DNA of 64,000 nucleotides from contig NW_024704742.1 in NCBI RefSeq assembly GCF_018977255.1, positions 137,950,001 through 138,014,000 on the forward strand. Direction: 5' to 3'. Below the pieces are notes generated by a model that worked only from the letters and a program-made list of their open reading frames with translations, searched no databases and was not told the origin of the DNA. Both the position numbers and the translations under genes were made by a program. The DNA comes from Callorhinchus milii (lineage: Eukaryota). Below, one piece after another: positions 31,896 to 64,000 of this stretch (its first letter is position 1; each line of letters begins with the position of its first letter).

Positions 31896-31907
31896 GAAAG
31901 AGGAACT
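31896..31907 (+). promoter_or_regulatory. PU.1/ETS-type site upstream of receptor gene copy 1
   Basis: GAAAGAGGAACT, a purine-rich PU-box, about 45 nt before the ATG at 31953. Paralogous site GAAGAGGAAGTG at 46671-46682. Confidence 0.45.
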
Positions 31908-31952: not shown

Positions 31953-32013
31953 ATGCTGCCTTTCTGCTTTTGGTTTTCCAGCGTCCTCCTGTGGGGCACA
32001 ACGCAGACTTCTG
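31953..32013 (+). CDS. Siglec-15-like receptor copy 1, signal-peptide exon (MLPFCFWFSSVLLWGTTQTS)
   Basis: ATG, 20 mostly hydrophobic codons, phase-1 donor G|gtatgt. Paralog at 46730. Phase matches the V exon at 33851. Confidence 0.8.
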
Positions 32014-33810: not shown

Positions 33811-33850
33811 TGTGTGTATGTTTGGTTTCAATGTGTCTCTGCCCACACAG

Positions 33851-34240: not shown

Positions 34241-34496
34241 GTGAGGAGACCGGTGTCTGTGCTGCTCTGTGACACAACAACCCGTCGCTGACCCCCCCCC
34301 CCCCACCCCCCCAAACCCCTACAATTGGCTCCTCTTCAGATATCTAACCAATTCCCTCCTGAAACCTAACCGGGATCCTCCCTCAACCCCCACTCCCAGC
34401 CGGGCATCTCACAACGAATCATAGAATCTTACAGCACAGAAGGAGGCCATTCAGCCCATCGAGCCTGTGCCACCTTTTTGAAAGAACTGCCAACAA

Positions 34497-35390
34497 ATCC
34501 CACTCCCCCGCTCTTACCCCAACTGGTCCCACTCCCCCGTACTTACCCCAACTAGTCCCACTCCCCCCCCCACCCCAACTAGTCCCACTCCTCCGCTCTT
34601 ACCCCAACTAGTCCCACTCCCCCGCTCTTACCCCAACTAGTCCCACTCCCCCGCTCTTACCCCAACTAGTCCCACTCCCCCGCTCTTACCCCAACTGGTC
34701 CCACTCCCCCGCTCTTACCCCAACTAGTCCCACTCCCCCGCTCTTACCCCAACTGGTCCCACTCCCCCGCTCTTACCCCAACTAGTCCCACTCCCCCCTC
34801 TTACCCCAACTAGTCCCACTCCCCCGCTCTTACCCCAACTAGTCCCACTCCCCCGCTCTTACCCCAACTAGTCCCACTCCCCCGCTCTTACCCCAACTAG
34901 TCCCACTCCCCCCGCTCTTACCCCAACTAGTTCCACTCCCCCGCTCTTACCCCAACTTGTCCCAGTCTCCAATTCTTACCCAAACTAGTCCCATTCCCCT
35001 GCTCTTACCCCAACTAGTCCCACTCCCCCACTCTTACCCCAACTAGTCCCACTCCCCCCACTCTTACCCCAACTAGTCCCACTCCCTCACTCTTACCCCA
35101 ACTAGTCCCACTCCCCCGCTCTTACCCCAACTAGTCCCACTGCCTCGCTCTTACCCCAACTAGTCCCACTGCCCCCTCTTACCCCAATTAGTCCCACTAC
35201 CTCGTTCTTACCCCAACTAGTCCCACTCCCCCGCTCTTACCCAAACTCGTCCCACTCCCCAGCTCTTACCCAAACTAGTCCCACTCCCTCACTCTTCCTC
35301 CAACTAATCCCACTCCCCCGCTCTTATCCGAACTAGTCACACTCTCCCCTCTCTTACCACAACTGATCCCACTCCCCCACTCTTACCCCA
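34497..35390 (+). repeat. 29-bp minisatellite (cccactcccccgctcttaccccaactagt)n inside a CR1 3' end
   Basis: Period of 29 measured directly; about 30 units by length. Confidence 0.95.
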
Positions 35391-37539
35391 CAGCCCTGCA
35401 CATTTTTCCTGTTTAAGTACGTATCCAATTCCCTTTTGAAAGCTATTATCGAATCTCCTTCCTTCACCCTTTCAGGCCGTGTGTTCCAGACCATAACAAC
35501 TCTATTAAATCTCCCCTTAACCTTCTCTGCTTTAAGGAGAATAATCCCAACTTCTCTATTCTCCCCACATCCCTGGTATTCTTGTGAAGCTCCTCTGCAC
35601 CCTCACCAGGCACTGACATCCTTCCTAAAGTCTGGTGCCCACAATTAATACTAATAATAATAATCCTGGCACACTGTGCACAATTGGCTGCCGCAAAATA
35701 CACAGTTAATTCACTTTACAGCATATTCAGTGATGGGCTTTGAGATGTGATAATACTCATATTAAATGCAAGGATTATTATTTGATGTCTTCGAGACGTC
35801 TCAAAACGCTTCACAGAATATACTGTAAAGTGAATTGACTCCAACTGAGGCCATTAGTAAAGATTCAAGATAACTTCCTTACTTTTATACTCTGTGCCTC
35901 TGTTTAAGAGGTGACGGTAAACACAGTCGAAGAGGAACGTCTTGAGGTGTGGTCTGAAAATGGGGAAGGGGGGGCCAGGCGGAGAGATTGAGGGAGAGAT
36001 CCCAAAGTTTCTGGGGGTAGTGGCTGAAAGCACGGCCACCGATGGCAGATCTGTAACCGTGGGACACTCCAGGCTCACAGTCCAGGCTGGTGCCCCAGGG
36101 TAGTGCTGGGGGAGCCCTGCCATGTCAGAGATGCCGTCAGTCGGGTCAGATGTTAAGCTGAGGGCCTGTCTGTGGAGGTTAAAGTTCCCGTGAAGCTGCT
36201 CAATAAGAGACTGGAGCTTAGAAACCGAACTCCCAGCCCTGACAGTGACTCCCGGGGAAGCTGTTTGAGACGCTTTGACATTGAACAGGAAAGTTTGACA
36301 TCTTTATAAAAGTCACCTCTAAACCGTTCAACCGTGTGTCCCGGCCACTCCCTCGGCTCAGCGGGTACCGACCTGCTTCACCTCCTCCGCCCTCTCCTCT
36401 CCCCCATCGGTGATCGGCTTTCAGCCATTCTGCCCCCGGCTCCATGGAAATCCATCCCAAAGCCCCTCCGCCTCACCCATTCACCTTAAAACATTCCCCC
36501 CGACCCCATCCCTGAACGTTGCTGTATCAATGTGAACTGTATTAGAGCAGCTGCTGAGAAACTAATAATCATGTCTGTCTGTCTGTCTGTCTGTGTATAT
36601 GTTTGTCCATCTCTTTGTGTATCTGTATATATGTCTGTGTACAAGTATCTTTGTGTGCGTACTCCGTGTGTGTCAGTGTATGTAACTGCAGGTGTCTCTG
36701 TCTGTATATCTGTGTGTGTTTCTATCTGTTGAATGTGTATCTCTGTATCTGTTTGTGTCTGTGTATGTGTGTCTGTGTCTCTCTGTATGTTCTGTGTCTG
36801 CGTATGTCTGTGTATATTCTTTGTGTGTATCTCTATGTTTATGTATGTGTCTGTGCGTGTGTTTGTGTGTGTGTCTATATGTTTGTGTGTGTTTGTGTCT
36901 GTGTGCACGTCTGTATGTTGTATGTGCGATTCTGCATTCATGTGTGTTTGTATGTGCGTCTATGTGTGTGCGCATGTCAGTTGGTGTCTGTGGGTGGGTG
37001 TGCAGTTATGCATGTGGGTGGGTGTGCATGCGGGTGGGTGGGCATGCGTGTGGGTGAGCCTGTATGCGGGTGGATGGGCGTGACTGGTGTTCGTGCGGGT
37101 AGGTGGGGGTGCAGTTGTGTGGGTGTGCGCTGTTGTGCGTATGTGTGGATGCAAGTGTCTGCGTGTGTGGGTGTTCGTGTGTATGGATGTTTGTGTGTGT
37201 GAGTGTTCGTGTGGGTGTGCGCGTATGTGCACATGTGTGCGTGTGTGTGTGGGTGCGCATGCGCGCGTGCGTATGTGGGTGTCTGTGCGTGGGCGTTTGT
37301 GCACATGTGTGCATGTGTGCATGGGCATGTGTGTGGGTGCGTGTGTGTGCTTGTGTGCACATGAATGAGGGTGCGTGTGCGCGTGTGGGTGTGTGTGTGT
37401 GTTTGTGCATGTGGGTGGGTGTGCGAGTGTGTGTGTGTGTGGGTGTTCGTATGGGTGTGCATGTGTGTGGATGTATGTGCCTGTGTGCGTGTGGCTGTGT
37501 GTGTTGTGAGTGTGTGACTCTGTGTGTTTCTTCTCTGAG

Positions 37540-37893
37540 GTGTTGACACAAACCACCGCCTGGTGATGGGGACGGTGGGAGAATCGGTGATGTTGCTTTG
37601 CCCACTGCCCTCTAATGGCCCTAAATATAAACTTGTCAACGTCACGTGGGTGAGGAAGGAGCCGTACAGCCACCTGGTGACCTTCAGACAGGAGGGTGGT
37701 TCCTGGAATAGGACGGAGGGTGATGAGCGGTGTGAGCTGAGGGGGAGCGCGGCTGATGGGGACATCACACTGACAGTGAGCCGCCTGGTAACAGAGGACA
37801 ACGGCATCTACCTGTGTCTCGTGGAGGCTGAGAAGGAGAACAAGAGACTCGTGATCCAGCGGGAGATCAGGCTCCAGGTTCAGAGCTCTCCAG
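37540..37893 (+). CDS. Second V-set Ig exon B, copy 1
   Basis: Acceptor ctctgag, donor G|gtaaga, 354 nt, phase 1-1. V-set hallmarks [11 protein letters not shown] and EDNGIYLC. Confidence 0.88.
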
Positions 37894-38402: not shown

Positions 38403-38495
38403 GTCTGGCTGCCATCTACATTCTGTGGCTGATACCGGCGGTTAAATGTCTCTTTCTGTTGGTGATGGGGATCATTCTCGTCTGTAACACAAGAG
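38403..38495 (+). CDS. Transmembrane exon with intramembrane Lys (GLAAIYILWLIPAVKCLFLLVMGIILVCNTR)
   Basis: Acceptor tttctttatacccgaag, donor G|gtttgt, 93 nt, phase 1-1. Hydrophobic span with a central K. Confidence 0.8.
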
Positions 38496-39746: not shown

Positions 39747-39790
39747 ATCGTACAAGATCACAAGAGCTTCAGGTGAAGGAGAACATCTGA
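39747..39790 (+). CDS. Short cytoplasmic-tail exon (DRTRSQELQVKENI*)
   Basis: Strong acceptor tttcctttctcctaag, phase 1, TGA at 39788-39790. An internal donor CAG|gtgaag is an alternative. Confidence 0.55.
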
Positions 39791-46480: not shown

Positions 46481-46670
46481 TGCCACAATCAAGGGAACTA
46501 ACAAGGCCTGGACTATCTTAGTTTTGCCAGTAAGCTGGTCCTGCAGGCTGAGACCGGGTGGAATTTTGGCAGAGCGACGCAGAACGAATAGTACATTTGG
46601 CTACAAATAGCAGCGATTGGATGATGGTGGAGGGGACGAGTGTGATGGAGAACTTCCTATTTCTTCATGT

Positions 46671-46682
46671 GAAGAGGAAGTG
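46671..46682 (+). promoter_or_regulatory. PU.1/ETS-type site upstream of receptor gene copy 2
   Basis: GAAGAGGAAGTG about 48 nt before the ATG at 46730; a second ACTTCCT at about 46652. Confidence 0.45.
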
Positions 46683-46729
46683 GAACTCATTTCCAGTTTA
46701 GTGTTGAGAGACACTCACATTCGCCAGCG

Positions 46730-46790
46730 ATGCTGCCTCACTGTGTTTGGTTTGCCAGCGTCCTCCTGTGGGGCACAACACAGACTAAGG
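46730..46790 (+). pseudogene. Receptor copy 2, signal-peptide exon (MLPHCVWFASVLLWGTTQTK)
   Basis: 61 nt, donor G|gtacgt, clear paralog of 31953-32013. Confidence 0.8.
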
Positions 46791-47094
46791 GTACGTACTC
46801 CCCATCCTCACACTGTGTGTCTGTACGAGTTGGGTGTCTGTGTGTCACTGAGGGTCTGTGTATGTTTGTGGGGTGGGGGGCGCTTTGAGATGTCACAACA
46901 ATGGGATAAAACGCTATATCATCTGCAAGAATTATTATTATTATTATATAATAATGTGTCGGAGGGGGAGAAGGATCCTGAGGTGAGGAGAGGCAATATA
47001 AGCTGAAGGTAGAATCTTAAAGGGGGTGAAGGAACAGAGAGACCTGGGGGTTCATATAAGTAAATCTTTGAAGGTGGCCGGACAGGTGGGTAAG

Positions 47095-47519: not shown

Positions 47520-48350
47520 ATAGAATCAAACAGCACAGAAGGAGGCCATTCGGCCCATCGTGTCTGTGCCGACACTTTGAAAAGAGCTTCAAATCAACCG
47601 CACTCCCCCGCTCTCTCCCCATAGCCCTGATCAACCCCACTCCCCCGCTCTCTCCCCATAGCCCTGATCAGCCCCACTCCCCCGCTCTCTCCCCATAGCC
47701 CTGATCAACCCCACTCCCCCGCTCTCTCCCCATACCCTGATCAACCCCACTCCCCCGCTCTCTCCCCATAGCCCTGATCAGCCCCACTCCCCCGCTCTCT
47801 CCCCATAGCCCTGATCAACCCCACTTCCCCACTCTCTCCCCATAGCCATACAAACTTGTCCTCCCCAAATAATTATCTACTTCTCTCTTAAAAGTTGTTA
47901 TGGAATCGGCTTCCCTCAGCCTTTCAGGCAATGCATTCCAGATCCCAACAACTCGCTGTGGAAACATTTCTCCTCACCTCCCTTTTGTTCCTTTTAACAA
48001 CTATTTTAAACCGGTGCCCTCGGGTTCCCGACCCACCGCCAGTGGGAATAGTCTCTCCTGATCACTCTATCGAATCCCCTCATAATATTGAAAACTTCTA
48101 TTAAGTTTCCTCTTAACCCTCTCTGTTCCCAGGAGAATAATCCTCACTTCTCTGCCTCTCCTGATCACTGAAGGCCCTCATTCCTGGTACCATTCTGGTC
48201 AATCTCCTTCGCTCCCTCTCCAATGCCTTGACATCCTTCCTAAAGTGTGGGGCCCAGAACTGAACCCAGTCTCTCGCTGAGGCCCCACCAGTGTTTTATA
48301 TAAAGGTTCATCATAACTTCCTGACTATTGTATTCTATGGCCTTATTCAT
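47520..48350 (-). mobile_element. CR1 3' fragment containing a 37-bp tandem array
   Basis: CR1 3' terminus at about 47520; array at 47597-47850. Confidence 0.85.
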
Positions 48351-49379
48351 AAAGTCAGGTGTAGGTGACATCAGTCAGGGTTGGAAACACTTAAGCGTGT
48401 GGATGGGTTTCCACCTGTGTCAGCTCCCCCCCACCCCACCAGCCTGTAACTCACTCTCTGGGTGGGGGTTACTCTATATATAAACCCTGAATCCCGGGAT
48501 TGGTCTCCATACTGTATCTCCCCGGTGGCCCTATTCTATGTGCTATATTCTCAGTGTTTATCATGTTACAGTCCAGGCCGACCCCACAGGGCATTGCTGG
48601 GGGAACGATCATTGTTGGAGGAGCCGTCCTTCGAGTCAGACATTAAAGCAAAGTCCTGTCTCTGCCTAAACAGACACAGACATTTATAACATCCCTCTCT
48701 ACACCCAGAGCGGGCGGGGGGCGGGGGGGAGATTCTCAGCCACAAAGCAGAGTTGACGCTGAGACCATCAGGTCTTTTATACCCGAATTGGACAGAGGCT
48801 TGAAGAGGAGGAATATTAAAGGGCGTGTGTGTGTCTGTGTGTAGGGAGGTGAGGGTGAGGGTGAAGGAGAGGGGGAGGATGGGGGTGAGGGGAGGGAGGG
48901 GGAGGATGGGGGTGTGAGGGTGAGGATGGGGGTGAGGGGGAGAGTGAGGATGAGGATGGGGGTGAGGGTGAGGGTGGGGTGAGGGCGAGGGGTGGGGATT
49001 ACACTGGGCTGAGAAAAGCACCAGCACTGGACAGGCTGCCGTCCTGTCTCTGCAGGAATCTGTGAGTTTATACAAACTGTTGGAGAAGAAACATTGTCTG
49101 ACTTTAATGCAGTGAATGTTTGTGTGTCTGTGTATGTGTGTACGTGTTGGCTGTCTATGTGTCTCTGTGTGTGTGTACATGTTTGTGTATGTTTGTGTGT
49201 GTTGGGTGTCTGTGTATGTTTGTGTGTGTTGGGTGTCTGTGTGTGTTTGTGTGTGTTGGGTGTCTGTGTATGTTTGTGTGTGTTGGGTGTCTGTGTGTGT
49301 TTGTGTGTGTTGTGTGTCTGTGTGTGTTTGTGTGTGTTGGGTGTCTGTGTATGTTTGTGTGTGTTGGGTGTCTGTGTGT

Positions 49380-50085
49380 ACCTCACCCCTCACGCGGCTG
49401 AAACTCTGGTCCATGGCTTCATCACCTCAAGGCCGGACTATGGGAACTCTCTCCTCGTCGGCCTTCCCGGCCCTCCCTCCACACTGCAGGTCATTCAGAA
49501 CTCTGCAGCTCGTGTACTGTCCCACACCATATCACTCCCACCCTCACCCTCACCCTCGCCCTCGCCCTCACTCGCCTCCACTGGCTCCCCATCCCCCAGA
49601 GGATTGATTTCAAGATCCTCATCCTCACCTACAAGGCCATTCACGGCCTTGCTCCTCCTACCTCTCTGACCTACTATCCCCCTACATACCTGCCCGTACC
49701 CTCCGTTCCTCTGGCTCCGGTCTGCTCCACATCCCCCGCCCCAACCGCCCGACCATCGGTGGCCTTCAGCCTCTCAGCCCCGAGGCTCTGGAACTCCATC
49801 CCCAGTGCCTTCGCCGCTTCCTCCCTTTCTCCTTCAAGGCCGGTCTCAAGACCTTTCTCTTCAGCTGTGCCTTCAGCTCTCCTCTCGACTCTCTACCACC
49901 TCCTCGCTCCCTCCCTTCCCTCCCCTCACCCTGACCATTTCCCCCCTCCTCGCTCCCTCCCTTCCCTCCCGTCACCCTGACCATTTCCCCCCCCCAATGC
50001 TCGGGTCCTGACCCAACTGTACAGCGCCTTGGGACGTCCTCCTGACGTGAAAGGCGCTCAATAAATGGAATCTTGTTGTTGTTGT
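49380..50085 (+). mobile_element. L2 3' fragment between the 27-mer array and V exon A'
   Basis: Family match; absent at the same site in copy 1 (33810-33850). Confidence 0.88.
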
Positions 50086-50126: not shown

Positions 50127-50518
50127 TATTCTCGCACAGCGGATGGACAATGATCGTCCCGGACGAGGTGACGGCTGAGAACGGGGCGACAGCCATTATG
50201 TCCCTCTGGTTCTCTCACCCAATTAGCCATTACAGCGGTGACATCACGATCATATGGAAGAGAGATAACAAGGACCTGATCAGCTTTCAGTGCTCCGGGG
50301 ACAGCGCAGCTCAGGGTCGGCCCCGCAAGTGTGAGACCCGGAAACCGAAGCCCGGGGGCGAGCGGTACCGGCTGCTGGGGACCCCTGGCATAACAACGCC
50401 GCACTGATGATAGACCCCGTGAGCAGTGAGGACCAGGGGGGGTATCTGTGCCGAGTGGAGCTTAACATCGATCGGCAACGGTTTAATTCCCCCATCACCA
50501 CCGAGCTGTCAGTGACAG
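50127..50518 (+). pseudogene. Receptor copy 2, V exon A', frameshifted
   Basis: Near-identical to 33851-34240 but with a 1-nt loss in a G run (ctgctgggg|acccc, about 50377-50380), giving a TGA at 50405-50407. A homopolymer sequencing error cannot be excluded. Confidence 0.8.
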
Positions 50519-50771
50519 GTGAGGAGACCGGTGTCTGTGCTGCTCTGTGACACAACAACCCGTTCGCTGACCCCCCCCCCCCCCCCCCCAAACCCTACAA
50601 TTGGCTCCTCTTCAGATATCTAACCAATTCCCTCCTGAAACCTAACCGGGATCCTCCCTCAACCCCCACTCCCAGCCGGGCATCTCACAACGAATCATAG
50701 AATCTTACAGCACAGAAGGAGGCCATTCAGCCCATCGAGCCTGTGCCACCTTTTTGAAAGAACTGCCAACA

Positions 50772-52190
50772 AATCCCACTCCCCGCTCTTACCCCAACTG
50801 GTCCCACTCCCCCGCTCTTACCCCAACTGGTCCCACTCCCCGCTCTTACCCCAACTGGTCCCACTCCTCCGCTCTTACCCCAACTGCTCCCACTCCCTCC
50901 TCTTACCCCAACTGGTCCCACTCCTCCGCTCTTACCCCAACTGCTCCCACTCCCTCCTCTTACCCCAACTAGTCCCACTCCCCTACTCTTACCCCAACTA
51001 GTCTCACTTCCCCCCTTACCCCAACTCGTCCCACTCCACTGCTCTTATACCAACTAGTCCCACTTCCCCGCTCTTACCCCAATTTGTCCCACTCCCCCAC
51101 TCTTACCCAAACTAGTCCCACTCCCCCGATCTTACCCCAATTAATCCCACTACCTCGTTCTTACCCCAACTGATCCCACTCCCCTTGCTCTTACCCAAAC
51201 TAGTCCCACTCCCCCGCTCTTACCCCAACTAATCCCACTGCCCCGCTCTTACCCCAACTCATTCAACTGCCCCGCTCTTACCCCAATCAGTCCCAATCCC
51301 TTGTTCTTACCCCAACTAGTCCCACTCCCCCATCCTTACCCGAACGAGTCCGAGTCCCCCACTCTTACCCCAACTAGTCCCCACTCCCCCGCTCTTACAC
51401 CAACTAGTCCCACCCCCCACTGTTACCCCAATCAGTCCCAATCCCTCGTTCTTACCCCAACTAGTCCCACTCCCCATTCTTACCCTAACGAGTCCGAGTC
51501 CCCAGGTCTTACCCCAACTAGTCACACTCCTCCGTTCTTACCCCAACTAGTCCAACTCCCCCACTCTTACCCCAACTTGTCCCACTCGCCTGCTCTTACC
51601 CCAACTCGTCCAACTGCCCCTCTCTTACCCCAACAAGTCCCACTCCCCCACTTTTACCCCAATTAGTCCCACTACATCATTCTTACCCCAAATAATCCCA
51701 CTCCCCCGTTCTTAACCCCAACTGATCCCACTCCCCCCAATCTTACCCCAACTAGTCCCACTCCCCGCTCTTACCCCAACTTGTCCCAGTCTCCAGCTCT
51801 TAACCAAACTAGTCCCACTTCCCCACTCTTACCCCAACTAGTCCCACTCCCTTGCTCTTGCCCCAACTAGACCCACTCCCCCACTCTTACCCCAAGTCCC
51901 ACTTCCCCGTTCTTCCCCCAACTAATCCCACTCCCCCCACTCTTACCCCAACTAGTCCCACTCCCCCGCTCTTACACCAACTTGTTCCAGTCTCCAGCTC
52001 TTAACCAAACTAGTCCCACTCCCCCGCTCTTACCCCAACTAGTCCCACTCCCTCGCTCTTACCCCAACTAGTCCCACTCCCTCGCTCTTACCCCAACTGT
52101 CCCAATGCCCCCACTCTTACCCCAACTAGTCCCAGTCCCCGCTCTTACCCCACTAGTCCCAGTCCCCCACTCTTACCCCACAGCCCTGCA
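50772..52190 (+). repeat. Paralogous 29-bp minisatellite, longer and more degenerate
   Basis: Same unit and flanks as 34497-35390; roughly 48-50 units by length. Confidence 0.95.
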
Positions 52191-53354
52191 CATTTTTCCT
52201 GTTTAAGTACGTATCCAATTCCCTTTTGAAAGCTATTATCGAATCTCCTTCCTTCACCCTTTCAGGCCGTGTGTTCCAGACCATAACAACTCTATTAAAT
52301 CTCCCCTTAACCTTCTCTGCTTTAAGGAGAATAATCCCAACTTCTCTATTCTCCCCACATCCCTGGTATTCTTGTGAAGCTCCTCTGCACCCTCACCAGG
52401 CACTGACATCCTTCCTAAAGTCTGGTGCCCACAATTAATACTAATAATAAAGCGAGCGAGTGAGTGAGTGAGCGAGTGAGTGAGTGAGCGAACGAGTGAG
52501 TGAGCGAGCGAGTGAGTGAGTGAGTGAGTGAGTGAGCGAGCGAGTGAGCGAGTGGCTGTCAGTGGGAGGACAGAACCCATTTTCTTTTCATTCTAATTAT
52601 TAATATCTCTGGGGCTCAGTGGCTCCCGTCTCCATGTGGCTCTCGCACACTACACAACAGGTCACAGCCTCAGCGTCAGGGTGGGGGGAGCCTCTCTCTG
52701 TCCCTCTCCCCCTCTCTCTCTGTTTCTCANNNNNNNNNNNNNNNNNNNNNNNNNNNNNNNNNNNNNNNNNNNNNNNNNNNNNNNNNNNNNNNNNNNNNNN
52801 NNNNNNNNNNNNNNNNNNNNNNNNNNNNNNNNNNNNNNNNNNNNNNNNNNNNNNNNNNNNNNNNNNNNNNNNNNNNNNNNNNNNNNNNNNNNNNNNNNNN
52901 NNNNTCTCTCTCTGTATATGTNNNNNNNNNNNNNNNNNNNNNNNNNNNNNNNNNNNNNNNNNNNNNNNNNNNNNNNNNNNNNNNNNNNNNNNNNNNNNNN
53001 NNNNNNNNNNNNNNNNNNNNNNNNNNNNNNNNNNNNNNNNNNNNNNNNNNNNNNNNNNNNNNNNNNNNNNNNNNNNNNNNNNNNNNNNNNNNNNNNNNNN
53101 NNNNNNNNNNNNNNNNNNNNNNNNNNNNNNNNNNNNNTCTCTTTGTCTCTCTCTGTGTACGTATGTTTGTCTCTCTCTCTCTCTCTCTGTGTCTCTCTGT
53201 GTGTATGTGTGTGTCTCTCTGTCTCTCTCGCTCTCTGTGTCTCTCTCTGTATGTGTGACCCTTTCTACTTGTGTGTGTGTGTGTGTGTTCCTGTGTGTAT
53301 ATCTCTCTGTATTCAAGTGTTTCCTGTCATTAGAATTATAGATAGTTTACACTC

Positions 53355-53770
53355 TCCGTTGCCTGGCACTGACTCTCTTGCCCGCTGCCTGGCATTTGAC
53401 TCTCTCTGTTGCCTGTTACCTGGCATTGACTCTCTCTGTTGCCCGCCGCCTGGCATTGACTCTCTCTGTTGCCCGCTGCCTGGCACTGACTCTCTCTGTT
53501 GCCCGCTGCCTGGCATTGACTCTCTCTGTTGCCCGCTGCCTGGCACTGACTCTCTCTGTTGCCTGTTGCCTGGCACTGACTCTCTCTGTTGCCCGCCGCC
53601 TGGCACTGACTCTCTCTGTTGCCCGCTGCCTGGCATTGACTCTCTCTGTTGCCCGCTGCCTGGCACTGACTCTCTCTGTTGCCTGTTGCCTGCACTGACT
53701 CTCTCTGTTGCCCGCTGCCTGGCACTGACTCTCTCTGTTGCCTGTTGCCTGGCACTGACTCTCTCTGTTG
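53355..53770 (+). repeat. 30-bp minisatellite before the FN3 exon
   Basis: Unit gcctggcactgactctctctgttgcccgct, about 13 copies; paralog at 63010-63425. Confidence 0.95.
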
Positions 53771-53782
53771 CCTGTCTGGCAG

Positions 53783-53888
53783 GAGCTGATTGTCGCTGGT
53801 CTGAAGCCGGGCACCAGATACCGTGTGATGGTGCGGGCGGGGGACGGGCGTCCCAGCCCCACGAGGGACGTAACCACGGTGACTAAAG
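53783..53888 (+). CDS. EGFLAM: Pikachurin/EGFLAM-like FN3 exon (ELIVAGLKPGTRYRVMVRAGDGRPSPTRDVTTVTK)
   Basis: Acceptor ctggcag, donor G|gtgggt, phase 0-1. Resembles EGFLAM EEVIGDLKPGTEYRVSI...GRLSSPRHVTTLSQ as recalled. May be a fragment or pseudogene. Confidence 0.7.
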
Positions 53889-54029
53889 GTGGGTACCACC
53901 TTCACCATCACCATCATCACCAGCCACTGCATTGCCATTTTGTTGTCAGCCCGGCTCCAGCCTCTGCCTCGCTCGCCTTTGGGTCAGGAGGTTGTGGGTT
54001 CGGGTCCCCACGACGTGTCCAGAATCAGC

Positions 54030-54350
54030 TCGAAGTCCAGACTCCGACGCACCAGCTCAGCGCTGGGAGGGGGGAGGGAGCGCGGGGAGAGAGAGAGAAA
54101 AAGGAAGAGACGCATCATCATAGATGCCGTCCTTCAGATGAGACGTTAAACCCCACTCCTCGTCTGTCCCTGTTCAGGTGGACATTAAAGATCCCGCAAC
54201 CCTGTCGGGAACAGAGAGAGGGATTTCTCTCTCTCTCTCTCTCTCTCCCCCCGTGTCCTGGGCAACAATCCCGCAGATAAAACCGCTGGTTCGTGTCATG
54301 GCTGTGTGTGGGACGTCGCTGTGTATAGATTACAGTAATTCCCTGTGAAG
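54030..54350 (+). mobile_element. Older Deu-domain SINE (SacSINE1-like)
   Basis: GATGCCGTCCTTCAGATGAGACGTTAAACC...GTTCAGGTGGACATTAAAGATCCC resembles the DeuSINE core. Further degenerate copies at about 3660-3840(-), 12190-12370(-), 15350-15600, 23850-24050(-), 26330-26520 and 63690-64000. Confidence 0.7.
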
Positions 54351-54589
54351 TGCCTTTGAGGAGTTACAGCTGCTGCTGTTTACAAGAAGGGTTTCCGGCC
54401 CCAACTTGGGTGTTCACTCTCCAGCGTCTTGGGATGTCCTCTCGACATGAAAGGCGCTGTGTAAATTTCGCTCACGAAATACACAATCACTGCACTCTAC
54501 GGTACATTCTGTGAAGCGCTTTGAGATGTCTCGACGAAGCAATGAACGCTGTATCGCATGGTTTATATTATAAATGCGGTTGGTGTTGT

Positions 54590-55690
54590 TGGTATTGATG
54601 TTGTTGTTGTTGATGTTGTTGTTTATGTTGTTATTGTTGATGTTGTTGTTGATGATGTTTTTATGTTGATGATTTTGATGTTGATGTTGTTGACAGTGAT
54701 GTTGATATTGATGGTGATGTTGTTGTTGTTGGTGTTGGTGTTGATGTTGATGGTGATGTTGTTGATGGTGATGTTGTTGATGTTGTTGATGGTGATGTTG
54801 TTGTTGATGTTGTTGATGGTGATGTTGTTGTTGATGTTGTTGATGTTGATGTTGTTGTTGATGTTGATGTTGATGTTGATGGTGATGTTTGTTGTTGATG
54901 GTGATGTTGTTGTGATTGTTGTGTTGTTGATGATGTTGATGGTGATGTTGTTGTTGTTGATGGTGATGTTGTTGTTGATGGTGATGTTGATGGTGATGTT
55001 GTTGTTGATGCTGTTGATGGTGATGTTGTTGTTGTTGATGGTGATGTTGTTGTTGTTGATGGTGATGTTGTTGTTGATGGTAATGTTGTTGTTGATGGTG
55101 ATGTTGTTGTTGTTGATGGTGATGTTGTTGTTGATGTTGTTGATGGTGATATTGTTGTTGTTGTTGATGGTGATGTTGTTGTTGATGATGGTGATGTTGT
55201 TGTTGATGTTGTTGATGGTGATATTGTTGTTGTTGATGGTGATGTTGTTGTTGTTGATGGTGATGTTGTTGTTGATGGTGATGTTGTTGTTGATGGTGAT
55301 GTTGTTGTTGTTGATGGTGATGTTGTTGTTGATGTTGTTGATGGTGATATTGTTGTTGTTGATGGTGATGTTGTTGTTGATGTTGTTGATGGTGATATTG
55401 TTGTTGTTGATGTTGTTGATGGTGATATTGTTGTTGTTGATGGTGATATTGTTGTTGTTGTTGATGGTGTTGTTGTTGATGGTGATGTTGTTGTTGATGG
55501 TGATATTGTTGTTGTTGATGGTGATGTTGTTGTTGATGGTGATGTTGTTGTTGTTGATGGTGATGTTGTTGTTGATTTTGTTGATGGTGATATTGTTGTT
55601 GATGGTGATGTTGTTGTTGATGGTGATGTTGTTGTTGTTGATGGTGATGTTGTTGTTGTTGATGGTGATGTTGTTGTTGTTGTTGTTGTT
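54590..55690 (+). repeat. (GTT/GAT/GGT)n trinucleotide-derived low-complexity tract
   Basis: Direct reading; explains most of the spurious 457-aa ORF. Confidence 0.95.
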
Positions 55691-55805
55691 GATGGACCTT
55701 TGCTGCTGGGAGGTCAGAAGACGGCTGAGGGTTCCGTGGTATTCACCTGAAGGACCAGCGTTTCAGGCCCCGAGTAAAATGGCCTCCTTCCCGGTGTGTT
55801 CACAG

Positions 55806-55941
55806 ATCACTGCCGCCCGCCTGACCCCCCCTCGCGTCCCGAGGCCGTGGCCATGTCTGACGTGGAGGTGGCGTTGGCCTGGCGACCAGGAGCCAGCCCA
55901 GGGAGCTCGCCATTACTGTACTACACAGTGAATTACACTCG
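55806..55941 (+). CDS. EGFLAM: Pikachurin/EGFLAM-like FN3 exon (DHCRPPDPPSRPEAVAMSDVEVALAWRPGASPGSSPLLYYTVNYTR)
   Basis: Acceptor ttcacag, donor CG|gtgagt, 136 nt, phase 1-2, in frame with 53783-53888. Resembles EGFLAM DSCLPPAAPQQP...[29 protein letters not shown]. Confidence 0.75.
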
Positions 55942-56899
55942 GTGAGTACAAGACTGACCGACATCCAGTGTGAGAGACTGACGCGTGTTAGTTGATGGGC
56001 GGATCGCTTTCCGGAGGTAATAATCCCTCAGAGAAAAAATTTGGCCACTCAACACCACGTCTGTTTATGGGTCAATACTGTGCGCAATTGGCTGCCGCGT
56101 TTCGCCCACAAAATACGCAGTCAATTCACGTATACTCTGTGTGTATATTCCCTGAAGCGCTTTGAGGCGTCTCAACGAAATGATAAGGCTTTGGTTGCAC
56201 GGAGTTTTTCGAGGAGAATCGTCCGGAAAGACTTCACGAAAAAAGGGTACGGATGGTGGTCGCAAGCGTTGGCTTGGCCGCTCAGGCCTCCTGCGCTGGT
56301 TAGGATGAACCGAGCCATTGACTCTCCCAACGGACTGAGTAGTTCAGGCCAACTGTGCCCTTGCAACAAAAATTTTCCTCCACACCTAACCCTGTTCGGT
56401 CACGTTGAGTCAGAGAAGTTTCCGTAAGCATTTGCAGGACAGTGGAAGGACTGAAGAACGAGGGGGACAGTTACAGTCGGCCAAGTAGGACAACCCCTGG
56501 AGCAAGATGGAAGTCTTAAGGTTTTGTGGGCAGTGGATTTGATGTTGGCGGAGGCTTTGAGAGCAATAGATCTCAGAGACTTGAACGGTTCTCTGTCTGA
56601 CTGAGCAGTTTGCCACAAGACCACAGGTCTATCCATCGCTGCTACAAACGAGATGAATGAACTCTTCTCCAGCTGCGCCCTCAACTCTCTGCCTTTCATT
56701 GACAAGTCTCCTGAAAGGGAAAGAGTTGAGAGCTCAAGAGTTGAGTTGGAGAAAGATACATTCTGCCATTATTTGTGAACTTTAATGCTGTCTCGACCTA
56801 CCATCTTGAACCATACACACTTGGGGGAAACAGCAGAGTTAACTTGCGCAGGTTGGGATTGATCAAAGTGAGTGAATATCCTATTTTAGTGAGAGAGAA

Positions 56900-56931
<32 letters not shown>

Positions 56932-57074
56932 ATTGGTCCGAATTGAAACGAGAGAGCTGTCCTGTTCTGTTCTGTTTGATTTGGTTTAGTTAACAAGGGA
57001 ACAATCGCACCTTTTAAACAAGAACGTTATTTAAACCAGTCTTTGAGAAAGCAGCCTTTGTTGTAATAAAGAAC

Positions 57075-57079
<5 letters not shown>

Positions 57080-57107
<28 letters not shown>

Positions 57108-57292
57108 CCTTGCATTTTGATATAGCGCTTTTCACGTCGGGAGGACGTCCCAAAGCGCTTCACAGAACACACTGTAAAGTGAATTGACTGTATATTTGTG
57201 GGCGAACGCGGCAGCCAATTGCGCACAGCAATGTCCCACAAACAGTCGTGTTGAAAATGACCAATTTATTATTGTTTTGGGTTTTGGAGGAT
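57080..57292 (-). mobile_element. tRNA-derived SINE cut by the assembly gap
   Basis: Family match that ends abruptly at the 25-N gap. Confidence 0.85.
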
Positions 57293-57317
57293 NNNNNNNN
57301 NNNNNNNNNNNNNNNNN
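57293..57317. other. 25-N scaffold gap
   Basis: Exactly 25 N; a SINE is cut at the left edge. Confidence 0.85.
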
Positions 57318-57812
57318 TTTCTCTCCAAATTAAGAAATAGAAGTTCTCCGTCTGCTCCCCCCCTGCCACCCCCCACCCCCCCACCCCCCAATTAGCATCA
57401 TTCATAGCCATGATCACACTGTCACACTGCGCTGGAGGATATTCTATTTGTGATCACTGATGCTGACACCACCCCAGCCAGCGAGCAAACCACATGTGGG
57501 GTGTGGAACCACGATGAAGAGGTTGTGCCCACAGCCCCGGCTGTGTGTCACTCTGCCGAAATCCCACCCGGTCTGAGCCTGTGAGACCACCTCACTGTCA
57601 GATCTAAGATAGCGCCAAATTGTGGAAAGTTCTTCAATCCCGGCTTGAAGCCGAGCGAGCGGGTTTGAATGGAAGTGAATCACGTGATTTAATTCAAATT
57701 GCAGTTCCGGTGTCTGTCGTTCAACAACAACATTACATTTGGACAGTCGCTGATTTGGACCTGAGTTGAGGGTCAGAATAGGGGAGGGGGGGAGGGGGAG
57801 TACATTTGCTTG

Positions 57813-59032
57813 AAAGCAATGGACTGTGGCTATTGAACGTTCCACGTTGTGGTGTATGGATAAAGATTGCTGTTTCCTCTTGTCATTCAGCTGGAGGAAG
57901 TAATGACATCTTGTGATTCTGCAACGTCTGGTGCTCAGAACTGTCTCCTATTCACATATGTCACCATTGTACACCAGTCACCTCCACTCCCTTAAAGCTC
58001 AGGTATGTGCTGCTGAAGGCACGAGGCTTAAATCGAACATAACGGTCCATCAGCAGATCTGACTGCACCTTATCAAATCGTCAAACCCGTCGCCTTCACA
58101 CCTCAGGCGCTGACAGCATCACCATCCATGGTTGCACACTTCACCTCACTGAGCCAGTCCAGAACCTTGGCGTCTTGTTCGACCCTCAACTATCCTTTCT
58201 ACCCCACATTTGTGCCATGACTCGCTCTGCCTTCCCCCACCTCCTCAACATCGCCCGGGTCTGCCATTGGCTCACACCACAGACTGCAGAAACCCTCGTA
58301 TACGCTTTCATTACATCGAGCCTCGACTATGCAAACTCCCTGTTTGTCGGCCTCCCCAACTCCTCCCTCCACACATCATCCAGAACTCTGCAGCCCATGT
58401 CCTCTCCCCCACCAGGCTCCGTGACCCTATCACCCCCATCCTCACCCCCACCAGGCTCCGTGACCCTATCACCCCCATCCTCCCCCAACTCCACTAGCTT
58501 CCCATCACACAGAGGATACAGTTCAAGATCCTGGTCCTTGTCTTCAAGACCCTCCATGGTCTTGCTCCCCCCTACAATCCTGCTCACTCTCTCCCCTCAG
58601 CGGGCTCCGGCCTGATTCACGTCCCTCGCCTCTCTCACCCCACTATTGGCGTATTGGCGTGTGGTCCTTCCACCACTCTAAACCCCACCTTCTGGAACTC
58701 CATCCCTCAGTCCCTCCGCTTTGTTGCCTCCTTCAATACCCATCTCAAGACCCACCTCTTTGACGGTGCTTTCGATCAACCTGCTTCCCCCCTGCCCTGC
58801 CCCTCCCCGATCCTGACCCCCTGCTCGGGTCAGAAACTCTGACTGTCCAGCGACTTGGGATGTGAAAGGCGCTTTACACATGTCATTTTGTTGTTGTTGT
58901 TGACAGAAAAAGAAACACAGCCCCGACTCAAACCATCTCCTTCCAAAGCCTCCACACACCACCTGACACCTCTCTTCTCTCAGGATTTTCCGACAACATA
59001 AACATAATGTGAGGCCCTACAGTTAGTGATTA
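57813..59032 (-). repeat. Inverted copy of 30720-31884 (5' flank of receptor copy 1)
   Basis: Reverse-complement near-identity; this copy has an extra ~37-bp tandem duplication near 58405-58480. Confidence 0.95.
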
Positions 59033-59135
59033 GCACTGGGCTCACAAGGGAGATGACCAGGGTCTGGTTCCCGGGTGGGGGAAAACCTTAGGCAAGTTTC
59101 CTTACTGCACTGTTTACCAGCAGTAAGCAGGAAAG

Positions 59136-59455
59136 TGGAGTCCTGTAGCTCAGTGGTTAGAGCACTCGCTTTGCAAGTGAGAGACCTGAGTTCAATTCCA
59201 GGCAGAGGGCGAAACCTTGGGCAAGTTTCCTTACTCCACACAGAGCCTAATAATAATCCCTCCAAAACCCAAAACAATAATAAATTGGTCATTTTCAACC
59301 CACGACTGTTTGTGGGACATTGCTGTGCGCAATTGGCTGCCGCGTTCGCCTACAAATATACAGTCAATTCACTTTACAGTGTGTTCTGTGAAGCGCTTTG
59401 GGACGTCCTCCCGACGTGAAAAGCGCTATATCAAAATGCAAGGATTATTATTATT
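59136..59455 (+). mobile_element. tRNA-derived SINE, full length
   Basis: Family match. Confidence 0.9.
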
Positions 59456-60089
59456 AAAGTGGTTGATAGTCAATTGGTGGATCACTTTCCGGGGGTAATA
59501 ATTACTTAACATTTTGTTAAATTGCTGTGCGCAATTGGCTGCTGTGTTCGGCCACAAAATAAACAGTAAATCCAAATTACAATATATTACGATGCGCTTT
59601 GAGATGTTTCAGTGATGTGATGCGATGCTGCATCAAATGCAAGAATTATTATTAATGTTATTGTTATCAATTTTTGTTGTTGTTGTTGAATTATCGACAC
59701 CAGAACTGTGATTTGAATGACAGTGAGCGATTCACACGGCCATTTAAACAACTCTCCGGAGTAAAAGCCTGACCGTGATGTTGAACAGGTGCTCAAAAAA
59801 CACTGGGTTACTGTTACCAAGAAACTTTCCCCATCACTCCCCCACTGGAGCTCTCTACTCTAACCCCATTCCCTGCTCTCTATCTCCCCATCGTGTCTGT
59901 GCTGGTGCTCACTCCCCCACTGGAGCTCTCTACTCTAACCCCATTCCCTGCTCTCTCCCCATCGTGTCTGTGCTGGTGCTCACTCCCCCACTGGAGCTCT
60001 CTACTCTAACCCCATTCCCTGCTCTCTCCCCATGGTGTAAAGGCTGTTTTGATATTGTGGGGTCAGGGATGTGGACAGAGGGATCTTAC

Positions 60090-60443
60090 CTGGAGAGCTC
60101 TGAACCTGGAGCCTGATCTCCCGCTGGATCACGAGTCTCTTGTTCTCCTTCTCAGCCTCCACGAGACACAGGTGGGTGCCGTTGTCCTCTGTTACCAGGC
60201 GGCTCACTGTCAGTGTGATGTTCCCATCAGCCGCGCTCCCCCTCAGCTCACACCGCTCATCACCCTCCGTCCTATTCCAGGAACCACCCTCCTGTCTGAA
60301 GGTCACCAGGTGGCTGTACGGCTCCTTCCTCACCCACGTGACGTTGACAAGTTTATATTTAGGGCCATTAGAGGGCAGTGGGCAAAGCAACATCACCGAT
60401 TCTCCCACCGTCCCCATCACCAGGCGGTGGTTTGTGTCAACAC
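60090..60443 (-). pseudogene. Receptor copy 2, V exon B', inverted
   Basis: Reverse complement of 37540-37893 with intact splice sites and three substitutions (D>N, I>T, Y>H in the DxGxYxC motif). No intact transmembrane exon was recognised downstream. Confidence 0.8.
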
Positions 60444-61649
60444 CTCAGAGAAGAAACACACAGAGTCACACAGACACACAACACACACAGCCACACACAC
60501 ACTGACATACAACACACACAGCTACGCACACGCAGACACCAACACACACAGCCACACTGACACACTTATCACATCTCAAATCCCATCACTGAATATGCTG
60601 TAAAGTGAATTAACTGTGTATTTTGCGGCAGCCAATTGTGCACAGTGTGCCAGGATTAGTGCAGGACAGAGGACCAGAGCAGAATAATACCTTCACATTT
60701 GTCCCAGCACCTTTCAGAGCGATTCATAAGGTTTGCTGTAAAGTGTAGTGACTGTGTGTTTTATGGTCGAAATGTGGACTGCGAGCTCGGAGACCCCGAT
60801 ACGTGGGGCTCGAACCCAGATCCTCCTGACCCAGGAGGTGAGAGAGCAAGAGGTCGAGCCTCAGGCTGACCTGGGAGGGTGGGGGAGTTGCTGGGAACGC
60901 GTGGCTGTGTGTGTGTGTGTGTGTGTCTGTGGGTGGATTTGTGTGTGGGTGTGCGGGTGTTTGTGTGGGTGTGTGTGAGTGTGGATGTAACTGAGCCATC
61001 AGTGTTGGTGTGAGGCTGAGGCAATATCTAAGTATTATCTGGGGGTACAGTGTATAGTTTGGGGCACGTCATGTCAGGAGACTGCCAGGATGGTGGCAGG
61101 TGAACGAGATGGACCTTGGGCTTCGTTCGCCTGCAAATCCTTATGATCTTACGTAGTATTTCACACAATACTTACAAACTCCTCGGCTCCGCTCAGATGC
61201 TTCTGTCAGGACAAAAACACAAACAATTCGAGTTCAAGTTCATCTGCAGTCTGTGGTCAGCAAGTCAAACCCTCCCCACAGCGAGTGAGGGACATAGGGG
61301 GGCTCCAGTGTCAAGAGATCGCACTCCCAACCCCTCACCCCACCACCACCACCACAATCTACACCACCTACACAGTCACTTCACGGTGTCTCGCTGTCTC
61401 TACCTCACATCTTCCCCATTGTGAGAAACAGGCTGATAATAATAATAATGCATACGGTATATGTAAAATCATAATTATTTGGTCACTCAATCCGCGACTG
61501 TTTGTGGGGACGCTGCTGTGCGCAATTGGCTGCCGCGTTTCGCCCACAAAATATACAGTCAATTTACTTTACAGTACATTCTGTGAAGCGCTTTGAGACG
61601 TCTGAACGACGTGATAAGGCGCGTATCAAATGCGAGGATTATTATTATT

Positions 61650-61865
61650 TTTCTATCAGTAAAAGTGCCATTGAGAAACAACACCACAATAACCTGGGAT
61701 TCACAAATGCAAACAGACAGGACAATAATCTGTAACAGATCAGGTACTACAATAAAGAATCAAATAGATTGTACATGTGGTGTTATTGATGCGGTTATTA
61801 TCTCAAGTGATTACAATGTGAAAGATAAGGAACTGGAGAAAATCAGAAAATATAAATTGAACGCA
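61650..61865 (+). mobile_element. Fragment of a restriction-like endonuclease domain from an R4/Dong-type non-LTR retrotransposon
   Basis: ITWDSQMQTDRTIICNR...VIDAVIISSDYNVKDKELEKIRKY matches the pattern LWD..IQTDR.I.HNRPD...IIDIA.P.D.NV..KE.EKI.KY. Confidence 0.75.
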
Positions 61866-62078
61866 GCCGTGTGTGCCGGTGGAAAACAAACAGAGTTCCA
61901 ATAATCATCAGTGCAACTGGTGCAGTTAATAAAACTATTTTTCTTATTATTATAATTATTATTATTTCACTCTGGGATGCACGGACATGTAGGTGGTTTG
62001 GATACTCTTAACAACATGTGCCAGACGTGTTGTTACAGCTCAAACTTAATCAACTGGTTGCCACGTGTTTGCCCACAG

Positions 62079-63882
62079 AGCGAGCGAGTGAGTGAGTGAG
62101 CGAACGAGTGAGTGAGCGAGCCAGTGAGTGAGCGAGCCAGTGAGTGAGCGAGCCAGTGAGTGAGCGAGCGAGTGAGTGAGCGAGTGAGTGAGCGAGCGAG
62201 CGAGTGAGCGAGTGGCTGTCAGTGGAAGGACAGAACCCATTTTCTTTTCATTCTAATTATTAATATCTCGGGTTCAGTGGCTCCCGTCTCCATGTGGCTC
62301 TCGCACACTACACAACAGGTCACAGCCTCAGCGTCAGGGTGGGGGGAGCCTCTCTCTGTCCCTCTCCCCCCCTCTCTCTCTGTTTCTCATGTATATCTTC
62401 CGTTGTGTTTGTGTTTGTGTGTGTCTTTNNNNNNNNNNNNNNNNNNNNNNNNNNNNNNNNNNNNNNNNNNNNNNNNNNNNNNNNNNNNNNNNNNNNNNNN
62501 NNNNNNNNNNNNNNNNNNNNNNNNNNNNNNNNNNNNNNNNNNNNNNNNNNNNNNNNNNTCTCTCTCTGTATATGTNNNNNNNNNNNNNNNNNNNNNNNNN
62601 NNNNNNNNNNNNNNNNNNNNNNNNNNNNNNNNNNNNNNNNNNNNNNNNNNNNNNNNNNNNNNNNNNNNNNNNNNNNNNNNNNNNNNNNNNNNNNNNNNNN
62701 NNNNNNNNNNNNNNNNNNNNNNNNNNNNNNNNNNNNNNNNNNNNNNNNNNNNNNNNNNNNNNNNNNNNNNNNNNNNNNNNNNNNNNNNNNNNTCTCTTTG
62801 TCTCNNNNNNNNNNNNNNNNNNNNNNNNNNNNNNNNNNNNNNNNNNNNNNNNNNNNNNNNNNNNNNNNNNNNNNNNNNNNNNNNNNNNNNNNNNNNNNNN
62901 NNNNNNNNNNNNNNNNNNNNNNNNNNNNNNNNNNNNNNNNNNNNNNNNNNNNNNNNNNNNNNNNNNNNAGTGTTTCCTGTCATTAGAATTATAGATAGTT
63001 TACACTCTCCGTTGCCTGGCACTGACTCTCTTGCCCGCTGCCTGGCATTGACTCTCTCTGTTGCCTGTTACCTGGCATTGACTCTCTCTGTTGCCCGCCG
63101 CCTGGCATTGACTCTCTCTGTTGCCCGCTGCCTGGCACTGACTCTCTCTGTTGCCCGCTGCCTGGCATTGACTCTCTCTGTTGCCCGCTGCCTGGCACTG
63201 ACTCTCTCTGTTGCCTGTTGCCTGGCACTGACTCTCTCTGTTGCCCGCCGCCTGGCACTGACTCTCTCTGTTGCCCGCTGCCTGGCATTGACTCTCTCTG
63301 TTGCCCGCTGCCTGGCACTGACTCTCTCTGTTGCCTGTTGCCTGGCACTGACTCTCTCTGTTGCCCGCTGCCTGGCACTGACTCTCTCTGTTGCCTGTTG
63401 CCTGGCACTGACTCTCTCTGTTGCCTGTCTGGCAGGAGCTGATTGTCGCTGGTCTGAAGCCGGGCACCAGATACCGTGTGATGGTGCGGGCGGGGGACGG
63501 GCGTCCCAGCCCCACGAGGGACGTAACCACGGTGACTAAAGGTGGGTACCACCTTCACCATCACCATCATCACCAGCCACTGCATTGCCATTTTGTTGTC
63601 AGCCCGGCTCCAGCCTCTGCCTCGCTCGCCTTTGGGTCAGGAGGTTGTGGGTTCGGGTCCCCACGACGTGTCCAGAATCAGCTCGAAGTCCAGACTCCGA
63701 CGCACCAGCTCAGCGCTGGGAGGGGGGGAGGGGAGCGCGGGGAGAGAGAGAGAGAAAAAGGAAGAGACGCATCATCATAGATGCCGTCCTTCAGATGAGA
63801 CGTTAAACCCCACTCCCCGTCTGTCCCTGTTCAGGTGGACATTAAAGATCCCGCAACCCTGTCGGGAACAGAGAGAGGGATT

Positions 63883-63914
<32 letters not shown>

Positions 63915-64000
63915 CCCCCGTGTCCTGGGCAACAATCCCCGCAGATAAAACCGCTGGTTCATGTCATGGCTGTGTGTGGGACGTCGCTGTGTATAGATTA
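62079..64000 (+). repeat. Segmental duplication, direct copy of 52451-54332 (runs off the window)
   Basis: See the partner feature. Confidence 0.95.
63436..63541 (+). CDS. EGFLAM: Duplicate of the EGFLAM-like FN3 exon at 53783-53888
   Basis: Same 106-nt exon and splice sites within a direct duplication. Confidence 0.7.

Follow-up and report, generated by a model that had tools for sequence, protein, structure and literature searches.

A Siglec-15-like receptor gene copy cut at a single base in a duplication-rich region of the elephant shark genome

Two copies of a receptor gene whose first domain resembles that of Siglec-15 lie in a 64,000-nucleotide stretch of the Callorhinchus milii (elephant shark) genome, which is called the window throughout this report. 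Copy 1 is complete, and its V exon B, transmembrane exon and last exon are 100% identical to the annotated C. milii protein XP_042192193.1 (P0001). Copy 2 is cut at a single base between its two V exons. As the assembly presents it, one half ends at position 52450 on the + strand and the other begins at position 60658 on the - strand, and a gap of 25 uncalled bases (N) stands between them. In this report, we describe the two copies and the two junctions at the cut, J1 (52450/52451) and J2 (60658/60659), and weigh whether they stem from a real rearrangement or from the assembly.

Copy 1 is a complete phase-1 gene on the + strand, and it preserves the arrangement against which copy 2 can be read. 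Its leader exon (31953-32013; MLPFCFWFSSVLLWGTTQTS) has a phase-1 GT donor and is in frame with V exon A (33851-34240), which encodes a Siglec-15-like V-set domain retaining the F-strand arginine (YLCRVE) and carrying leucine in place of the B-strand cysteine. V exon B (37540-37893) encodes a second V-set domain, and it is followed by a transmembrane exon with a lysine within the membrane segment (38403-38495) and by a final coding exon with the stop (39747-39790). The annotated XP_042192193.1 begins at a methionine inside exon B, and an intact, in-phase leader and V exon A with splice sites lie upstream of that methionine. Judged from these exons, the leader and the first V exon, which supply the first 150 residues, are probably missing from the annotated model of copy 1.

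The + strand half of copy 2 starts with leader exon L' (46730-46790; MLPHCVWFASVLLWGTTQTK) and continues with V exon A' (50127-50518), which differs from exon A by five substitutions, all of them amino-acid changing, by a 3-base insertion and by a 1-base deletion in a G5 run that shifts the reading frame; the deletion is possibly a consensus error of the continuous long reads (CLR), a G5 run being a typical site for one. In the intron between the two V exons, a 29-base minisatellite (50766-52180, +) spans 1414 bases as against about 900 in copy 1 (34490-35390), and this difference in length marks the + half as a locus distinct from copy 1. The half closes with 270 bases (52181-52450, +) that are 100% identical to 35391-35660 and end at J1. 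On the - strand, the other half opens at J2 with D' (60567-60658), 92 bases that match 35661-35752 at 98.9% and contain a 5'-truncated short interspersed element (SINE); beyond D', the 1.67 kb at 35753-37418 of copy 1 are absent, and the match picks up again at 37419 and extends through V exon B' (60090-60443, -). Exon B' has an open frame with three substitutions (D to N, and IY to TH), the second change leaving it without the tyrosine of the YxC motif, so that eight of the eight substitutions in the V exons of copy 2 change an amino acid. Beyond B' lies an intron remnant, j' (59797-60089, -), which includes a 71-base tandem repeat and in which homology ends about 15 bases before the acceptor of the transmembrane exon. 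No transmembrane exon for copy 2 was found in 52451-64000 on either strand, and none is present elsewhere in the window. Copy 2 is thus without a membrane-anchor exon in the window on both sides of the cut and is a spare, already crippled copy. Two further observations concern the introns: a minisatellite with a 27-base unit is found in both copies (33354-33836 in copy 1 and 49120-49379 in copy 2), and copy 2 alone carries an insertion of a dispersed L2-like repeat, at 49379-50085.

The similarity of copy 2 to copy 1 is strongly graded along its length. In the + half, identity rises from 82.6% in the leader region (46670-46815) through 93-94% (47851-47994) and 99.3% around A' to 100% in the last 270 bases; past the cut, it is 98.9% in D', 98.4% in the region of exon B' and about 80% in the intron remnant. 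This profile suggests that in copy 2 the core of an older paralogue was recently homogenised; the core may be a gene conversion tract or a young duplication. Because the homogenised tract spans the cut, the cut is probably younger than the homogenisation.

The junctions can be read directly against the uncut site of copy 1, a (TAA)4 run (35650-35672, +) in which the position of the cut falls between 35660 and 35661. There, copy 1 reads ACTAATAATAA followed by TAATCCTGGC (at greater length, CCCACAATTAATACTAATAATAA followed by TAATCCTGGCACACTG). At J1, on the + strand, the same ACTAATAATAA is followed by AGCGAGCG, the continuation past 52450 being AGCGAGCGAGTGAG; at J2, on the - strand, TAATCCTGGC is preceded by CCTGCAC, with TAATCCTGGCACACTG running from 60658 downward and preceded by GTCCTGCAC. 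Exact identity to copy 1 extends 288 bases leftward from 35660/52450 and 77 bases rightward from 35661/60658, and the unique segments flanking the cut are 98.4-100% identical to copy 1. A sequence-only reading of the window had placed a single-base cut between the two V exons, with nothing lost or shared and with the two novel junctions in unbroken sequence, one to each side of the 25-N gap, and the junction letters bear this out in full: the two homology blocks abut with a gap of 0 and an overlap of 0, and the TAA units add up to 3 + 1 in the halves of copy 2 for the 4 of copy 1. With block ends free to fall within about 4.7 kb, we infer that so exact an abutment would arise by chance with a probability of about 2e-4. 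The same reading had put the cut in the (TAA)n tail of a SINE remnant; the run, which sits between a fragment of another repeat and a 5'-truncated, + oriented SINE that starts 6 bases past the cut, is not clearly such a tail. Neither junction carries a shared repeat or microhomology, the partner being a microsatellite at J1 and unique DNA at J2, and the two partner ends (60659 and 62079) fall in one neighbourhood of 1.4 kb.

The sequence joined to the + half, called X1 and 'g' (52451-57292, +), contains N blocks and a 30-base minisatellite. Its first part, 52451-54332, is a direct copy of 62079-64000 (X2, +), which runs off the window. X begins exactly at a (GAGC/GAGT)n microsatellite (52451-52555 in X1), and X1 and X2 are 96% identical over the first 280 bases and 99.8% identical over the next 1 kb. 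Aligned over 1033 columns, the segments X1b and X2b differ by 2 mismatches and 7 gap events, and past the microsatellite a few non-homopolymer differences are seen by eye in the first 175 bases. Between J2 and X2 lie the 1420 bases of U (60659-62078, +), single-copy in the window, with a - oriented SINE beginning 24 bases past its left end. X holds a fibronectin-III (FN3)-type half-domain exon, exon a (53783-53888 in X1 and 63436-63541 in X2, +), and a second such exon, exon b (55806-55941, +), lies in 'g'. Both have good splice sites (AG and GT for exon b), and both are found without change in P0022 (UPI0004571975), a partial C. milii protein model of older date, exon a at 100% and exon b over residues 69-114 of the model. 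The first 33 residues of P0022 match nothing in the window. On this evidence, X belongs to a neighbouring + strand gene, and one of its two copies is a partial duplicate of that gene. Neither receptor exons nor a palindrome centre was found in 54332-57292, which holds only FN3-type exons (two), SINEs and an 18-39-base tandem array. A simple balanced inversion would show two reciprocal junctions from one cut in a gene with zero loss, as are seen here, and no duplication at the breakpoints, whereas X occurs twice and in direct orientation. The sequence-only reading, which had noted that 52451 onward copies 62079 onward, was therefore right that the event is not a simple inversion.

That reading had also let the - half match copy 1 from 35661 and continue to B'. 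The starting point and the arrival at B' both stand, and the continuity does not, since it lasts for only the 92 bases of D'. To say that the event split the gene likewise overstates the case, given that copy 2 has no transmembrane or tail exon in the window, that its homology ends about 15 bases before the transmembrane exon and that A' carries a 1-base deletion. A further point, absent from the earlier account, is that a third gene unit begins, with its 5' end, after the - half, and this gives the locus a history of more than one step. After B', the order on the - strand is two SINEs, a 53-base exact match, a block 'Bb'', a 475-base segment 'h', the start of a 5' untranslated region (UTR) and the gap. 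The head of the third unit (57318-59032, -) comprises Bb' (59032-57810), 'h' and the first 15 bases of the 5' UTR (57332-57318), where it is cut by the gap. Bb' and the block 'Bb' on the promoter side of copy 1 (30722-31887, +) are 98.2% identical, the latter consisting of a 5'-truncated fragment of an L2 long interspersed element (LINE) with its flank; 'h' shows partial homology to the copy 2 promoter region (57612-57544 against 46513-46581). The 53-base match (59487-59539 against 29511-29459) is separated from the block by different transposon insertions in copy 1 and in the third unit, and its presence in both means that the duplication reaches further 5' than the L2 block. Two independent LINE insertions were considered as the origin of 'Bb' and rejected, as homology at 98% continues past the L2 part in the 5' direction and the 53-base match, further upstream on the other side of the block, stands in the same relative order. 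The head of the third unit lies in tandem after the B' fragment.

How the two halves of copy 2 are placed relative to each other depends on the scaffold. The contig that carries copy 1 and the + half is bounded by two 25-N gaps and extends over 7359-57292, about 50 kb. The second of these gaps (57293-57317, unstranded) has flanks that are not continuous. On its left, a SINE breaks off within its body and, by comparison with 16322-16641, is short of about 115 bases at the head; on its right, the - strand sequence terminates in TAATTTGGAGAGAAA, the first 15 bases of the 5' UTR region of copy 1 (31885-31899). Scaffolding alone therefore sets how 7359-57292 and 57318-64000 are ordered and oriented with respect to each other, and the opposite orientation of the two halves, which had been put forward as the signature of an inversion, is not supported, because it depends on this join. 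The gap also falls inside the putative inverted block, which in a simple inversion would be joined contiguously to both flanks. The N blocks within X are of a different kind. Those in X1 (52730-52904 and 52922-53137) are in register with those in X2 (62429-62968): visible islands of 17 bases (TCTCTCTCTGTATATGT) and 12 bases (TCTCTTTGTCTC) stand at equal offsets in both regions, and the spacing of shared anchors across the blocks is 606 bases in X1 and 599 in X2. The flanks are therefore collinear, and J1 is not located at a contig end. The blocks, which no exon spans, do not look like scaffold gaps but like bases that were masked or left uncalled within continuous sequence.

We put it at somewhat better than an even chance that the window records a real rearrangement as scaffolded, namely an inversion through a double-strand break, with duplication of X, that disabled a non-functional copy 2. 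The letters show the junctions, the duplications and the gene anatomy. For the order of events and the repair pathway, we infer a scheme in which one double-strand break in the (TAA)4 run of the A'-B' intron would have been blunt end-joined to two nearby ends. The left half, with L' and A', would have been joined to a copy of X, starting in its (GAGY)n microsatellite, and the right half, with B' and the start of the third unit, would have been joined in reverse to U, the 1.4-kb segment preceding the other copy of X. As both partners are left-facing ends of one locus, X must occur twice in the product of such an event. The two simplest histories that could have led there are as follows. An inversion of the block that begins with D' might have been accompanied, at the left junction, by a templated duplication in direct orientation that took in at least 3.5 kb and up to 4.8 kb of X; or an inverted duplication, X-U-X, might have existed beforehand, with the second inversion break falling at the border between arm and spacer of this palindrome. 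In either history, a third junction, or the remainder of the third unit, would be hidden at the 25-N gap. These histories correspond to the two models proposed from the sequence alone, templated insertion at the break and inversion at an arm of a prior inverted duplication, both of which stay compatible with our analysis. The blunt joins suggest end-joining, and the presence of a microsatellite at each break suggests sites that were fragile or stalled. Such an event belongs to a known class, the complex inversions with duplication in duplicated gene clusters. Like inversions with breakpoint duplication (DUP-INV), which arise by replication-based or end-joining events, and palindrome inversions, it shows two reciprocal junctions, as scaffolded an inverted block, extra copies of neighbouring sequence and breaks in microsatellites. 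It differs from them in that the copies of X are direct, where the staggered-break model gives inverted ones, in that microhomology is absent and in that the third junction is not visible.

Several features argue for real DNA behind the contigs. The reciprocal junctions are exact to the base and bordered by long stretches of exact identity, J1 lies away from any contig end, and an unbroken A-B arrangement is the ancestral one. Each half can be told from copy 1 by structural markers of its own: the + half is a distinct locus in the same contig as copy 1, with a minisatellite length, a transposable element (TE) insertion (49379-50085) and a leader of its own, and the - half has the 1.67-kb deletion, with the eight substitutions counted as evidence as well. 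That all of copy 2 is a haplotype of copy 1 can be rejected for the + half, which shares a contig with copy 1 and has its own leader (82%), minisatellite length and TE insertion. A misjoin mediated by repeats would hide its switch point in shared sequence, so the absence of shared sequence at the junctions favours a real event, and partner ends lying within one 1.4-kb neighbourhood would fit a local event in vivo better than random chimeric reads. Set against this is the possibility, which we find doubtful though far from negligible, that copy 2 is continuous in the genome (L', A' and B', then the third unit) and that the junction or junctions and the second X are errors of FALCON, HiRise or gap filling, introduced where contig ends were chimeric, a haplotype was left unpurged or a single locus was assembled two times among duplications that are 98-100% identical. 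False duplications and misjoins beside gaps are known in long-read assemblies, and the locus resembles them in its near-identical copies around a scaffold gap, its indel-rich differences, its short contigs and its setting in a duplicated gene cluster. The assembly, IMCB_Cmil_1.0, was built from PacBio CLR at 68-fold coverage with FALCON and then scaffolded from Chicago and Hi-C data with HiRise (PMC12952989; PMC8302630), and PMC8302630 reports that haplotype sequence remained in the primary assembly of its lamprey genome, which was made in the same way. The region is badly assembled for the C. milii genome, with a contig of about 50 kb bracketed by 25-N gaps against a contig N50 of 1.6 Mb (PMC8302630). 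X1 and X2 straddle the scaffold gap, and their differences, 2 substitutions and 7 indels, are dominated by indels and resemble CLR noise in one locus assembled twice. The second contig starts only 3.3 kb from J2 and ends at the gap just where identity to the 5' UTR of copy 1 begins, a typical repeat-induced assembly break, and a contig break made by software would likewise leave zero loss or gain at the cut. The 100% identity beside the cut means that the event is either very young or artefactual, and a real event needs a pre-existing palindrome or three junctions, the third of them unseen. Exact look-ups in public assemblies of two open reading frames (ORFs) that span J1 and J2 (108 and 41 amino acids) gave no match; this says little, since ORFs of this kind seldom enter gene annotations. 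An assembly error, however, has difficulties of its own. Misjoins in overlap assembly arise within shared repeats, and here the sequences that meet are unrelated, with neither an N nor a common base between them; a scaffolder that breaks and rejoins would leave Ns, which the junctions do not have. Two independent chimeras would be needed, with the same break base and with partners both drawn from one 1.4-kb neighbourhood. X2 starts 4.76 kb inside the second contig, so that the copies are not overlapping contig ends and a plain overlap of contig ends leaves J1 and J2 unexplained; artefacts of this type give no base-exact reciprocal junctions. In the first 175 bases beyond the microsatellite, moreover, X1 and X2 show a few differences other than simple homopolymer indels.

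The scaffold join itself could be at fault. If the junctions are real and the second contig is mis-oriented or misplaced, the halves of copy 2 would share a strand, and a large insertion would lie between them, beginning with X and ending with an inverted X and then an inverted U. The non-continuous flanks of the gap, across which orientation comes from proximity ligation alone, leave room for this, as does the exactness of the cut, which is what an insertion site would show, and flipping the second contig does place D'-B' on the + strand. We nevertheless consider it unlikely, because the insert would have no target-site duplication, its ends are neither TE-like nor matching, U at one end only would make it asymmetrical, and orientation by Hi-C is usually reliable if the second contig is long. 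A further reading, a V-set/FN3 chimeric gene newly formed by a real rearrangement and thus exon shuffling caught early in an immune-receptor cluster, is very improbable in our view and presupposes that the deletion in A' is a sequencing error. What speaks for it is that the leader and V exon A' of copy 2 stand upstream of two intact FN3-type exons on the same strand, as scaffolded, and that the phase-1 acceptor of exon b (55806-55941) is compatible with the phase-1 donor of A'. We attach almost no weight to an enzyme-directed cut in the V-gene intron, whether by inversional recombination of the recombination-activating gene (RAG) type, as in V(D)J joining, or by a DNA transposon or Helitron. 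The gene does encode V-set domains, the joins are as precise as signal joints, and a heptamer-like motif, CACTGTG, occurs 11 bases 3' of the cut; the cut also falls between A and T within TAA repeats, and sites between A and T are the targets of Helitrons, as TAA is of Harbinger elements. But the heptamer stands away from the cut instead of adjoining it, and a nonamer is absent at a spacing of 12 or 23 bases; the inserted ends are AGCGAG... and ...CCTGCAC, not TC...CTRR, and have no terminal inverted repeats; and a total TAA count equal to that of copy 1 means that no TAA was duplicated. Reading the junctions thus led us to reject RAG-type joining, Helitron termini and a target-site duplication by Harbinger or any other element. 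Together, the evidence leads us to regard the cut as probably real, the trace of an ordinary rearrangement in a region rich in duplications.

The receptor that was cut is Siglec-15-like, to judge from its predicted protein, by its first domain, the conserved arginine and the transmembrane lysine, and not by its second domain or the B-strand cysteine. Domain A matches the Pfam V-set family (E = 2.9e-10) and, over about 110 residues, the Siglec-15 structure 7zoz_A (E = 6e-16), with CD33 and Siglec-5 next. Motifs common to domain A and 7zoz are WxMxVPxEVxAE, FxHPxxHYxG, RxRLLG(D/N)P and Y(L/F)CRVE, and the F-strand arginine for sialic-acid binding is kept by sequence, with YLCRVEL in copy 1 and YFCRVEF in 7zoz. 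The transmembrane segment of P0001 and copy 1 is LAAIYILWLIPAVKCLFLLVMGIILVC, with its lysine. Domain B is also a V-set domain (E = 1.3e-14), and its best solved relatives are the V domains of pIgR and CD4; it does not align to domain 2 of 7zoz and so is not the C2-set second domain of a Siglec. In exons A and A', leucine stands at the position of the canonical B-strand cysteine (AIMSLWF against AVLPCTF); elasmobranch homologues keep the cysteine, and both elephant shark copies carry leucine. In the homologues from Pristiophorus and Pristis (P0004-P0006), domains A and B are within one protein, from which it follows that A and B belong to one gene and that the contiguous A-B arrangement is ancestral. 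P0005 also has a transmembrane segment and a tail resembling an immunoreceptor tyrosine-based inhibitory motif (ITIM; VIYAAV), and P0001 and the elasmobranch homologue P0007 have a transmembrane lysine and a short tail. Such sequences suggest a family of paired activating and inhibitory receptors in cartilaginous fish. Our search for literature on Siglec-15 in cartilaginous fish found nothing useful. Siglec-15 is a conserved sialic-acid-binding Ig-like lectin of vertebrates that has a transmembrane lysine and pairs with DAP12. The receptor described here shares with it the N-terminal V-set domain, the arginine motif and the transmembrane lysine with a short tail, and differs in its V-set second domain, in the change of the B-strand cysteine to leucine and in belonging to a multigene family that includes ITIM-like elasmobranch forms. 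The cluster also recalls the KIR, LILR, PILR and CD300 families and the NITR family of teleosts, which are likewise multigene with charged-transmembrane and ITIM-like members; recent duplication and homogenisation, truncated copies and V-exon substitutions that only change amino acids (8/8) add to the likeness. This predicted receptor cluster differs from these in the Siglec-15-like first domain and in its holocephalan lineage. Upstream of the cluster, exons of a BTB/POZ and C2H2 zinc-finger gene lie at 15878-24745 on the + strand (Pfam BTB, E = 4.7e-08, with several zf-C2H2 hits).

The consequence of the cut is the fragmentation of a spare, already crippled receptor copy; no function is gained, the biological effect is small and current understanding is not overturned. 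As a practical matter, the elephant shark reference is not trustworthy at this locus for copy number or gene models. If the rearrangement is real, it would be a very young, base-exact case of duplication, gene conversion and inversion breaking up spare immune-receptor copies, and it would have taken place in an early-branching jawed vertebrate, beside an intact paralogue that preserves the uncut site. The locus is, in addition, a pointer to an unannotated Siglec-15-like multigene family with charged-transmembrane and ITIM-like forms in cartilaginous fish.

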